DNA of 35,234 nucleotides from Guillardia theta CCMP2712. Taxonomy: Eukaryota > Protista > Cryptophyta. Position numbers and translations under genes: made by a program. The DNA lies in contig NW_005434660.1 of the NCBI RefSeq assembly GCF_000315625.1, positions 894,743 through 929,976 of the forward strand, read 5' to 3'. How positions within the stretch are numbered: the stretch's first letter is position 1; the number at the start of each line of letters is the position of its first letter. A model generated the notes under the pieces. The model searched no databases. It worked only from the letters and a program-made list of their open reading frames with translations, and had not been told where the DNA came from. This document shows, piece by piece, positions 29,130 to 35,234 of the stretch.

Positions 29130-30111
29130 TCACCAGCCAAGGTCGCTTCTGCATCGCATCCAACGGATCAGTCCGTCGGGTACTGAACATCCCCGGCATC
29201 GGCGCAATCTACATGGCACCACACATCAGCATGGAATCTGCTCACGTCACAATTGGAGCCTTACCGGCGAACGCATCAAGCGGTTCAACCAGGAGCCACT
29301 GGCGAGGAAAGATCAGCTTTACCACAAGGATCATGCATCAGGCACCTGTCTGGTAAAAGTCTGACCCTAGTGAAGCTTTTGCCGAAAGGAGGCAGAAACA
29401 TCGGACTATGGAAAGGAACGAAAGGAAGGGCAAAGGGAATACAAATCGACAGCAAGGGGATGACAAACGTGGAGCCGACAGCCATGTTCTTCCCCTTTGT
29501 GTTAATATCAAAATAATCAATGTTCACCTGCAGCATCGAGTACAGTGAGAACCAGCTATCAGAGAGAAGGACAAACCAAGGGAAGAGGTTATGATAAAAG
29601 GCTTTGGGGAGGGAAGATCAAGGATTTTGTGGAGGAAGAAGAAAAACTTCATACCAGTGCACGTTTCCATGGCTCTACGAAAGTGATTTTTGGCGATTGG
29701 AGCAGAAAATCGGCAGTTTTCTGCGCAAAGGAAGAAAAACATCTCAGCGGATCTCCAAACATCATGATCAAATTCAACCTTTCCCATCTCTGGTTCAGTT
29801 GTGATCAGCGGACCTCCAACGGACGAGCCCACCGCCTTTTCAGGCAACACTGCATCAGTCGCATTCACAATTTTCCAGGTTCTGTTTGTCGGCATCGTAG
29901 CTGACCCTCCCGTCAGTTTGTCTGCGAAATGCAATGTCTTTGGAACTTCTTTCGCTGAAGCCACTGCCGCAAGCCTCCTCCCCGAGCCACCACGGAGACG
30001 CAGCATGCTCGACAGACCCTCATGGTATGTAGTCGCTGCTGCCATGGTTTCTGCACTGATTCCATCTGACAGACACTGAAGTGCTGCAGCGATGCAAAAA
30101 ACTTTCCACAT
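29130..30111 (-). CDS. Unknown protein with signal peptide and leader ending in LRLRGG; 3' end uncertain
   Basis: MWKVFCIAAALQCLSDGISA-ETMAAATTYHEGLSSMLRLRGG-SGRR. Short GT-AG introns continue the frame (..EFDHD|KTADFLLQSPKITFVEPWKRAL|VNIDYFDINTKG). Confidence 0.6.
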
Positions 30112-31544
30112 CCTTTAGGGCGTGGAAACCGAGTTGGCCAGTGCAGCCAATATGGATGTCAATTCAATATCAAAATCTGCACAAACCATCGATCAGTCAC
30201 AGGGGATTCGCTCAAATCTTTCAAGACGTTCCTTTGTCGTTGCTGTACTGTCTCAATGGCCTCTGGTCTCTACATCGCGACTGCCCTCGTTGCTGCTTTC
30301 ACACTATACAGCCTCCACCTTCCTAGGTACTTGGCACTCGGGACATCACTGTCCTGTTCGGTCTTCCCTACACACAAATGTACATCTTTCATTTGTCTCA
30401 TATCTCGTCCATGCTCTTCTTAGTTCGGCCCCCACCAACTTTCCGATCCTCGCATGCTCAACCAGAAGACCCGTCGCGGCAACTGTCTGCGAACACCAAA
30501 CAGGGGAAATTCGTATATTTGATGAAAAGTCAAGACTCAGCAATCTCACCTATCTCACCATCATCTAATCTAGTCTCCAACCTTCTGTCTCGGAGTAACA
30601 CCCTGTTCTGCTACCCCCATGGTTCTGTTGCTCAACCCCGTTCTGGATCGTATCCCCTGTCCTCGTGTTCTCACACTCAATGTTTGTCCTCACTTCTTCT
30701 TCTCTGTTCCCTCTCTGTCTGCTCCATGTTGTCCTTCTTCGTCTAGGCTTGCTCTGACCTGCATTCCCATGCTCTTTCTACCATGCCTTTCATAACAGGC
30801 GGCCCCGCCAGGCCATGCACGGGGAGGGAGGGAACGAGGGTACGGGGTGGTAGGCCCTGAACTCGATGGTAGGGGTGGTATGAGAGTCCTAGAGGGTGGG
30901 GGTCAGATTGCGAAATTGAAGGGGTAGTGAAAGAGAGCGACTGGTGGGGGTTGTATTTCACAGGCGATAGGGTAGGGTTATTCTTATGGGGGTGCCATCA
31001 ACTGATTGGGAAGACTAGCATGGTAGGGTACTACAAATGCTTAGCAAAGACGGGTGGTTTAGTGATGTATTTTGAAGAATCGTCCTGGTGGGTTACCAAA
31101 TGATGGGGTGAGATTATCGTCAGGGGGGTGGGGGTGACTGTGATGGATGGGAATATTATGTAGCAAGGGGTGGGTGAAGTAGGGGTCAGTGCTCAGCGGA
31201 TCTTTCTTATAAACAAAGGGGTACTTGATTTAAGGTGGTGTCCAGACAAGAGCTGAGGGTGGGTGAGAATTGGAGATAGAAGGGGTAGTGGAACGGAAAT
31301 GGGGGTGAGGGTTGTTTGTAAGGGAACCTGCTTCTTTTAGGACAAGCACAGGCTGCAGAATGGGGTGGGGTAGAAATCTCTTATAAAACGTTTTATCATA
31401 ATAATCTTGTTTTATATCTGTATGGGTATGGTAAGATATTTGGAGTACGAGGTAGAAATTTAACAATGAGTTATTGAGTTTTCTGGTACCATAGATCTTT
31501 ACTCAAAGTTAAAAGCATACCGACAACAAGTGACTTACGGACTT

Positions 31545-32275: not shown

Positions 32276-33024
32276 GCACTCGGTTATGAGTCAAAGTGGT
32301 TTAGCTAGGTATCGGTACAATACAAGTACATTACTTACAGTACAGAACAGAGTACCTAGATCATTTACTCATCAAGCTCGAATGATACTTTTTATTTTTC
32401 TTACTAATTTTAAAAACATTTGTGGGTTAACGTGTAGTATCGGTTTATACAAAAAGTTATAATTATATATATATTTAATGGGAAGCCCTACGACACCCTC
32501 CAATCACCGCGGAAAATGACCGGTTGAACTGTGAATTATGAAACGATGGGGTGGGTACTACCATATAGAGAAAAGAGGCATCAGTGGGGTAGGGTGATAT
32601 ATGAAAGTAGTACTTGCGGCAAGGGTATGGGAGAGACTAGTCAGAAAGGGGGGTGGGTGTAGTTCAGAGGGACCGGTAGTGTTGTGAAAAGTGGGGTCTT
32701 CAATTGATGGGGTCCTGATGAGTGGGATTGGCATGGGTAGTATAGTGGTCTTAGAGGGGTGATGGAGGAATGAGGAAATTAAAGTCAGGGTAGGGTTGCA
32801 ATTAGTCAAGGGTGGGGTAGGCAAAGCAGGGGGCCGGTTTCGTGCAGCGCGCGGGGAGGGAGGAAAAAAAACGGAAAAAAACACACAAGAGAAACAGGGA
32901 TACAGGCACAGAAGAGTAGGGAGAGGAAGGAGATTTGCTGATCCTCAAGGTTGTCAAAGCAGTTTTGCTGCTCTGAATCTGCTCAGGGGAAGGGAAAGTG
33001 GAAGGCAAGAAAACAAGCACTACC

Positions 33025-35234
33025 ATGCCCAGATCCACCATGCTTTGGCCGAGCCTTGCATGCGTTGCAGTTGCCCTCACACTGGTTTCTTCTCTCGTCG
33101 ATGCAGATATCTCAGTGAATGGCAACATGCTGCTCGGAATGAAACAACAGGGGCTCTCTCAATCATCCTGCATGCGTTTGAGGGGAGGGAACGTCGCAAT
33201 GACTACGGAGCCGGCTTCTGCTGTTGATGCCGATGCAAAGACCAAGAAGCATCCTGGTTTCATCTCTCCTAATCGTTTGCTTGTCCGTGAGGCAACCAGG
33301 TGAGCTGATCCCTTCGGGACTTGCCTCCATTGCCTTGCTACCATTGTCCATATATCTCTTGCACTTGGTTTCTGGTGCATTGCCATGAGCTCTAGTAGAT
33401 CGAGTGTAAGTACGTGAATTGACACGTTTGATTGCAGCAAGGATAACAGTATTATCGGACTCCACCCCGACAGGATCCAGGAGCTCGGATTTTTCAATGG
33501 CGACACCATTAAAGTGAAAGGGAGGCGGTCGAGGGAGACAGTCCTCGTGGTCGTCCCCGATGAGTCGATTAAGGTGGAAGAAGCACGCCTCCCCGACGTG
33601 GCTTCGAAGTATCTCCGAGTACGATTCCCTGGCAACGTGATGTCATGCCTGATCCTCTTGCCAGATCCCAGCTGGGAGCAAGGATCGCATCAAGGTCCAT
33701 GAGTTTCCGGAAATCAAGAATGCCAAGAGGGTCCATGTCTTGCCGTACGTGGAGCTCGATGCAGGTGTGAGAACATGACGTTGGTTGCAGATTCAAAGAC
33801 AGTGTCAATGGGTTCGAAGGAGACCCCTTCGAGGTGAGCTCACGATATCAGGTTGTGCCATGGAAGATTTCCTGACTCGTGGGCAGGTGTTCTTGAAGCC
33901 ATATTTCTTTGAGAACTATCGCCCTGTTCATGTCGGCGAAGTGTTCCCGGTCTACAATCAGGAGCTCGACATGACTGTTGACTTCAAGGTTGGGACGCTG
34001 CTGCAGCACTGACGACCAGAGTTGACCTTGTCATCCAGGTCATGCAGATCGATGACGAAGAAACCGAGTGGGGCATCGTAGCGCCTGAGACAGTCGTCTA
34101 CACTGAAGTGAGAGACAGCTTGTGCTCCACTGCTTCTGAGATTCGGCTGCTCTGCCCTCTCATACGATGATGTTTCCCTTGCTCTTTCTCCCCCTGCCTC
34201 GTGATCCCTTCCTGGGTCCATGCCAGATTCCTCTCCTTTCCTCCCCACAGACGATGACTTGGGCACAGGGCAAGCCATTGGAGCGTGAAGAAGACCCAGC
34301 AAGGAGCTCTGAGGTTGGCTACGACGACATCGGAGGACTCTCGAAGCAGATCCACCTGCTGCGGGAAATGATAGAACTACCCCTCAGGCACCCCGCGTTC
34401 TTCACGAAGCTGGGAGTGAACCCTCCACGTGGTATCCTCCTCTATGGACCTCCTGGATGCGGAAAGACGATGGTCGGACAGGCTCTGGCGACCGAGTCGG
34501 GAGCGTTCTTCTTTCTGATCAACGGGCCCGAGGTCATGTCGGGCAAGGCCGGCGAGTCGGAGTCTCACCTTCGCCGATGCTTCGAGGAGGCAGAGAAGAA
34601 CCAGCCCTCGATCATCTGGATCGACGAGGTGGACGTCATCGCTCCGAAGAGAGACAAGGCCAACGGAGAAGTTGAGAAGAGGATAGTGTCGCAGCTCCTG
34701 TCGCTCATGGATGGAATCACGGCGAACAAGCAGATCATGGTTGTCGCCGCCACTGGCAAGCCCAACAACATCGATGGAGCTCTCAGGAGGTTTGGGAGGT
34801 TCTCCAAGGAGATCGAGTTGACATCTCCGGATGACAAGGGCCGTTACGAGATCCTCAAGATCAAGACCAGGAACATGCAGCTTGCCGACGATGTCGACTT
34901 GCAGCAGGTGGCTCACGATACGCATGGATACACGGGAGGCGATCTTGGGCAGTTGGCAATGGAGGCAGGTCTTGCTGCTGTGAGGGGCCAGATGGACAAG
35001 ATCGACATCGATGCTGATGAGATTGAGATGTCAGTGATGAAGTCGATCAAGATCAGGCACATCGACTTCCTTCAAGCCATGCAGAAATGTCATCCTTCCT
35101 CCCTGCGCGACAAGGCTGTAGAGATCCCCGATGTCACCTGGAACGACGTTGGAGGGTGAGGAGGAGGAGGAGGAGGAGGAGGAGGAGTGCGACGGGCGAG
35201 GGGGGGGTAGGGGGGAGGCGAAGGAAGTGGTGTC
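33025..35234 (+). CDS. CDC48: Cdc48/p97 AAA+ ATPase with N-terminal bipartite leader (candidate periplastid/SELMA sCdc48); 3'-partial
   Basis: N-domain PNRLLV..DNSIIGLHPDRIQELGFFNGDTIKVKGRR, FLKPYFFENYRPVHVG; D1 VGYDDIGG, ELPLRHP, Walker A GPPGCGKT, Walker B IIWIDEVD, ALRRFGRF; start of D2 EIPDVTWNDVGG. Leader MPRSTMLWPSLACVAVALTLVSSLVDA is signal-peptide-like. Confidence 0.95.

Follow-up and report, generated by a model that had tools for sequence, protein, structure and literature searches.

A six-residue motif that ends in diglycine and resembles the C-terminal tail of ubiquitin was analyzed in the leaders of two head-to-head genes of the cryptophyte Guillardia theta CCMP2712, one encoding a Cdc48 protein and the other a protein referred to here as the neighbor. 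Both lie in a stretch of 35,234 nucleotides, hereafter the window (contig NW_005434660.1, positions 894,743 to 929,976, assembly GCF_000315625.1). The motif, hereafter the box, probably marks the junction between leader and mature protein and probably is a real and functional processing site. A cut after the second glycine is likely, judging by sequence together with one diatom N-terminus. We lean, with more reserve, toward a complete stepwise explanation in which the box is the processing site that ends the bipartite leader of proteins of the periplastid compartment (PPC), the relict cytoplasm that surrounds the plastid.

In the Cdc48 gene, the box reads MRLRGG (33172-33189, plus strand) and comprises residues 50-55 counting from the ATG at 33025; a Met and a hydrophobic stretch lie upstream in the same frame. 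The encoded protein is JGI model gt_161858, a member of the published PPC set (ASAFind 2 Appendix S3), for which ASAFind 2 gives Phaeodactylum tricornutum 50978 as the best hit (PMC12136025). According to TargetP (ASAFind 2 supplement, PMC12136025), the signal peptide (aa 1-27, 33025-33105) is cut at VDA|DIS, placing Asp at +1 and leaving a transit-peptide-like spacer of 22 aa (33106-33171) that is variable and unalignable with orthologue spacers. The same start Met is found in the G. theta transcript-derived protein P0173 (UniRef A0A7S4NN30, 881 aa), in which Pfam detects CDC48_N plus two AAA domains behind the bipartite leader. The remainder of exon 1 up to the intron joint (33190-33299) is predicted to encode a mature N-terminal extension and the start of the N-domain. 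Pfam CDC48_N begins at residue 84, 28 residues beyond the diglycine and not immediately behind it as in an earlier reading of the DNA letters alone (the sequence-only reading). The exon for the D1 AAA domain (34269-35156, plus strand; Pfam AAA, 2.9e-40) shares 48-61% identity with another Cdc48-like locus, which lies on contig C193, and the gene runs past the window end. In the literature, the nuclear cryptophyte Cdc48 copy is s_Cdc48-2. An extra A behind 33009, upstream of the ATG, was present in all three contig sets and reflects either strain variation or a mistake in the assembly.

The neighbor carries LRLRGG on the minus strand (30003-29986), residues 37-42 counting from the ATG at 30111 and likewise in frame with a Met and hydrophobic stretch. 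A hydropathy scan (mean Kyte-Doolittle value 2.2; cleavage site set by eye) gave a signal peptide of about 20 aa (30052-30111), Glu at +1, and, from the reading frame and the motif position, a spacer of 16 aa (30004-30051). These estimates and the TargetP result for Cdc48 agree with the spacers of about 22 and 16 aa and the acidic +1 residues reported in the sequence-only reading. Spliced transcript-type contigs with GT-AG joints cover the first exons of both genes, so that each box is a genuine part of a transcribed first exon, behind a signal peptide. LRLRGG is unchanged in P0190, a 96%-identical variant of the neighbor, which is weak evidence. By their sequence, both leaders belong to the known bipartite class of PPC proteins; for the neighbor, a location in the PPC is suggested by the leader.

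Degenerate patterns matched the G. theta genome 353 times for the LRLRGG type, 92 times for the LRLRGA type and 157 times for the LRGLRG type. In a sample of 61 strict [LMI]RLRGG matches from contigs 1-13, a Met and a signal-peptide-like stretch preceded 29, compared with 0 of 31 permuted controls (p=5e-7); such a stretch was found at 48 of 1727 background sites. The enrichment among signal-peptide proteins, a check named beforehand, was therefore found, and it rules out chance as the source of the motif. Scaled to the whole genome, we estimate roughly 160-210 box-bearing genes, variants such as LRLKGG being extra. Codon usage within the box was mixed, with 32 distinct 18-mers among 33 leaders, and the leaders could not be aligned, which rules out spread by recent duplication and supports the proposed selection at the protein level. 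Spacers of box-bearing leaders varied in length, mostly 10-50 aa (range 9-59). The residue after the diglycine (P1') was variable in the 33 leaders, Pro being absent (0/33) and Met enriched (4/33, p=0.009). Carriers were unrelated to each other; among them were EF-1alpha, pyruvate kinase, a methyltransferase and proteins with ankyrin, TPR or WW domains, with a weaker match to CBM20. In G. theta EF-1alpha, the native start GKEK directly abuts the diglycine of the box.

The box distinguished periplastid from stromal proteins. Six G. theta leaders have been placed in the PPC as green fluorescent protein (GFP) fusions, namely those of ugg-t, EF-1alpha, 14-3-3, RRM1, CyP and Ubc8 (PMC12136025), and all six end in xLRGG (ASAFind 2 set). 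Two ASAFind 2 examples outside the GFP-tested six, hemE and iddi, were devoid of it, as were ER-type G. theta signal-peptide proteins (ER, endoplasmic reticulum), that is, TPR/DnaJ co-chaperones, trypsin-like proteins and glutaredoxin. When 46 rows of a cryptophyte plastid set were inspected by eye, the box occurred in only three, all with a non-aromatic +1 residue, and was absent from the other 43. The three were a second FBPase and two nucleotide transporters, and the FBPases provide a paired control, the Phe+1 enzyme lacking the box and the second one carrying it. The sequence-only reading of a periplastid rather than stromal marker is upheld by these two sets of leaders. The H2A encoded at locus L019 has both a signal peptide and LRLRGG and so agrees with the single N-terminally extended H2A, which was immunolocalized to the nucleomorph (PMC5443833); a gapped pattern for H2A matched nothing, the gene having an intron there. 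The MRLRGG leader of L029 (G000:C6:175155) may follow an ALA|F cleavage with Phe at +1, in which case the rule of a non-aromatic +1 residue may have an exception here. The box-bearing leaders share signal peptide, transit-peptide-like stretch and non-aromatic +1 residue with the bipartite PPC targeting sequences of cryptophytes and diatoms that are served by the symbiont-specific ER-associated degradation-like machinery (SELMA), but none of the published descriptions found names a conserved motif at the leader end. ASAFind 2 evaluates 25 residues at the signal cleavage site and makes no mention of RGG (PMC12136025).

Conservation of the box was evident in diverged Cdc48 proteins. Cryptophyte orthologues, taken from Hemiselmis andersenii and from environmental transcripts and showing 72-76% identity in D1, have unalignable spacers and yet keep MRLRGG or LRLKGG; [LM]RL[RK]GG was present in all orthologues that include the region. 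Canonical Cdc48 relatives whose start was intact had no such leader in the same scan. In the diatom signal-peptide family of the sCdc48-2 type, RGG occurred in 66 of 66 sequences including the region and was invariant across 44 non-redundant leaders whose mean identity is 33%; the query had been picked for its RGG, and family matches were scored over 330 residues. The PPC-localized sCdc48-2 of P. tricornutum belongs to this family and carries RGG. Most matches of a 50%-cluster search were distant Cdc48. Leader-bearing Cdc48 proteins of cryptophyte, diatom and pelagophyte origin grouped in a single clade, separate from canonical Cdc48 (FastTree, SH 99, long branches), in a tree that lacks nucleomorph and red algal rows and hence does not split paralogue 1 from paralogue 2. 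The window Cdc48 thus resembles SELMA s_Cdc48-2 in being nuclear, leader-bearing and grouped with diatom sCdc48-2-type proteins. Two intron-less Cdc48 genes of the eukaryotic assembly GCA_013565615.1 (L099:2164-4839 and L109:2173-4839), placed in the symbiont-type clade, encode a signal peptide and a spacer, with IKGG ahead of the mature part. The diatom sCdc48-2 leaders (P0039, P0191-P0268; residues about 30-60) contain a second motif, FG, upstream of RGG, with Phe in 77% and Gly in 86% of the 44 non-redundant sequences, and FG-like words likewise occur in the sCdc48 and TrxH leaders of Thalassiosira pseudonana.

An N-terminus on record bears directly on the cut. T. pseudonana 21460, an entry of the ASAFind 2 set under ptDUP, the known PPC deubiquitinase, contains IPRGG followed by SDSDSFTQQR just before the Cys box of the ubiquitin-specific protease (USP) domain. 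SDSDSFTQQR is listed as an acetylated N-terminus at position 233, with two spectra, in the Mascot and X!Tandem tables of Huesgen 2013 (PMC3774753), and by hand count Ser233 directly follows the diglycine. N-terminal acetylation arises only in vivo (PMC3774753). Trypsin cleavage would give a peptide that retains the diglycine, and no Met precedes SDSDSFTQQR. Three further diatom peptides predicted to start after RGG were not in the N-terminome list, which is incomplete and hence uninformative on them. The claim that the leader is removed after the diglycine therefore stands for one diatom protein, and for the window genes such a cut would follow by analogy. The stromal transit-peptide cleavage motif of diatoms (PMC3774753) is similar in that the leader is lost after import and mature N-termini are often acetylated, but differs in having Ala or Ser at -3, Leu at -2 and no diglycine.

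Several features point to an enzyme of the ubiquitin or ubiquitin-like (UBL) type, which we consider somewhat favored as the agent of the cut. The cryptophyte box consensus equals ubiquitin residues 71-76; the neighbor has the exact tail, and Cdc48 deviates by Met for Leu at P6. The PPC ubiquitin of G. theta, gt_155024, carries LRVRGG before its ubiquitin domain and LRLRGG-SY at its end (ASAFind 2 Appendix S3), so that an activity cutting after diglycine is needed in the PPC. Ubiquitin precursors (polyubiquitin and ubiquitin-ribosomal protein fusions, matured by UCH and USP enzymes) likewise have an LRLRGG|X junction with no Pro at P1'. They differ from the box leaders, which have a short variable spacer behind a signal peptide and no ubiquitin fold; there is no folded 76-aa ubiquitin domain before the diglycine in the spacers of 22 and 16 aa, and neither first exon gave a Pfam match. 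The box leaders resemble a ubiquitin-fusion junction in how they would work but, lacking that fold, do not qualify as members of that family. Viral LXGG-cleaving proteases (coronavirus papain-like protease, adenovirus protease) and Ulp/SENP enzymes offer no more than an analogy: their deubiquitinase-type or Ulp-type folds can cut short diglycine motifs without a ubiquitin domain, but in viral polyproteins or SUMO and not in organelle import. The leader of gt_155024 resembles a degenerate ubiquitin-like domain ending in LRVRGG and, judged by this likeness, is a possible evolutionary source of the box. About 18 similar partial matches to Ulp1/C48 proteases, in long open frames on many contigs and several of them near contig starts, probably represent a mobile-element family. 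Of the original proposal that a deubiquitinase-like protease reads a ubiquitin mimic, the selection at the protein level, the marking of PPC proteins and the position at the junction have held, whereas the enzyme class is one that we infer.

The stepwise explanation would run as follows. The signal peptide would carry the precursor into the chloroplast ER and then be removed, and the spacer would bring the precursor through SELMA into the PPC; the former step is established, and the latter is established for such leaders and would extend to the window Cdc48 by homology. A PPC protease would then cut after [RK]GG and release the mature protein, as for the one diatom protein and presumably for the window genes. 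This protease would most likely be of the ubiquitin- or UBL-processing kind, the same activity that matures PPC ubiquitin. Stromal precursors would avoid the box because they need the transit peptide for the inner two membranes, and for this reason the cut may also help to hold proteins in the PPC.

A number of observations weigh against this explanation. The direct evidence for the cut comes from one diatom protein, two spectra and a gene model with a doubtful N-terminus, for which reason T. pseudonana 21460 supports the rule but does not prove it. Among 21 PPC homologues of T. pseudonana that have a signal peptide, RGG was seen in only about 5, so the box is not universal in diatoms, and in the diatom Cdc48 leaders P4 is mostly Pro (19/44) and P5 is Ile or Val, only RGG matching ubiquitin. 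Most cellular deubiquitinases require the folded ubiquitin domain. An incomplete search of USP, UCH, Ulp1 and OTU loci revealed no leader-bearing deubiquitinase in G. theta, and none of these loci was adjacent to any strict motif in the lists, which cover contigs 1-22. ptDUP is reported to be absent from cryptophytes and apicomplexans (bioRxiv 2025.03.31.646294), and in Toxoplasma PUBL the RGG that lies ahead of the ubiquitin domain is neither cut nor needed (PMC5487736).

These points bear on what might replace the favored explanation. The cut could be real and the maturase another diglycine-reading protease, with the full match to ubiquitin arising by convergence or lineage-specific refinement. 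We give this a minor but serious chance, as only [RK]GG is common to the cryptophytes, the diatoms and the L099/L109 lineage with its IKGG, LRLKGG variants exist and ptDUP is reportedly missing from cryptophytes; it sits less easily with a cryptophyte consensus that reproduces all six residues of the ubiquitin tail and with a PPC ubiquitin that requires the same cut. It is rather unlikely that the box acts mainly as a binding or stop-transfer signal for a SELMA or Cdc48 cofactor, releasing cargo in the PPC, with cleavage in cryptophytes incidental or absent. Such a signal would agree with the very good separation of PPC from stromal proteins and with the uncut internal RGG of PUBL, but the in vivo acetylated N-terminus exactly after RGG, the native EF-1alpha start abutting the diglycine and the lack of Pro at P1' speak against it.

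An earlier cut in the chloroplast ER lumen, or a box that marks a wider class including periplastid-membrane and ER proteins, appears improbable. Some membrane proteins, the two nucleotide transporters and L029, do have the box, and localization is on record for a minority of the approximately 200 carriers; on the other hand, the ER-type signal-peptide proteins of G. theta lack it, and the spacer is thought necessary for crossing the periplastid membrane. It is scarcely credible, and has been largely refuted by conservation, that the box arose by chance or survives without function from leaders once copied out of a ubiquitin-fusion gene: the degenerate ubiquitin-like domain in the PPC ubiquitin leader would offer an origin, but mixed codons, unalignable leaders, invariance in diverged orthologues and the strong enrichment all contradict it.

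Beyond its leader, the neighbor gene (27942-30111, minus strand) comprises 13 exons encoding about 444 aa, with twelve GT-AG introns in transcript-type contigs and frames open exon by exon. Its C-terminal part, encoded by exons 7-11 (28166-28870, minus strand), may be SPRY/B30.2-like; this is a lead from atlas features, which scored 0.87-0.90 on an intron-containing frame with SPRY as the nearest named clusters, and an exon-by-exon search gave no Pfam match, SPRY included. Among orthologues, just the 96%-identical P0190 was found, single-exon queries being unable to reach full-length kin. The two start codons are separated by 2.9 kb (30112-33024) with a GC- and CpG-rich island at about 31500-32300 that reaches 83% GC and has weak inverted repeats and AT-rich flanks. 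No evidence was obtained that this spacer links the two motifs, and run X17 supplied 8 raw reads, too few for calling start sites. Head-to-head adjacency was not accepted as a sign of co-regulation, because about 200 carriers give a few chance neighbors. Elsewhere in the window, IMRGG follows a Met and short hydrophobic stretch in a short frame within a simple-repeat region (about 800-930, plus strand) and is probably a chance match. Two inverted duplications were observed, one between 19802-22016 and 23433-25479 (blocks of 876, 482 and 257 bp, 92-95% identity) and one between 26750-26974 and 27303-27524 (225 bp, 98% identity). Ordinary genes of the window include an ABC1 atypical kinase (9162-10016, plus strand) and a Mo25-like gene (10701-11822, minus strand).

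No description of the box was found in the searchable literature; Gould 2006 (MBE), Stork 2012 and the G. theta starch-synthase paper lay outside that reach, and a prior mention is possible. What the present analysis brings is the invariant RGG of diatom sCdc48-2, the paired stromal control and an in vivo N-terminus after RGG. For the removal of periplastid leaders in complex-plastid import, the Toxoplasma literature has so far only inferred a peripheral maturase (PMC5487736). With a defined site, leader processing can be tested on a single GG>AA mutant and a substrate peptide. The box also gives PPC and nucleomorph proteins a positive marker at the sequence level; until now they have been predicted mainly from the missing Phe at +1. 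Because cryptophytes and diatoms share its core, the box is relevant to the common origin of their import systems. As a tentative proposal, to which we attach less than even confidence, algae with red secondary plastids may use a ubiquitin-type protease to mature periplastid proteins via a minimal, fold-less ubiquitin tail; the cut would do more than the +1 residue by itself to fix a protein in the PPC, and the ubiquitin system would supply both SELMA motor and maturase.

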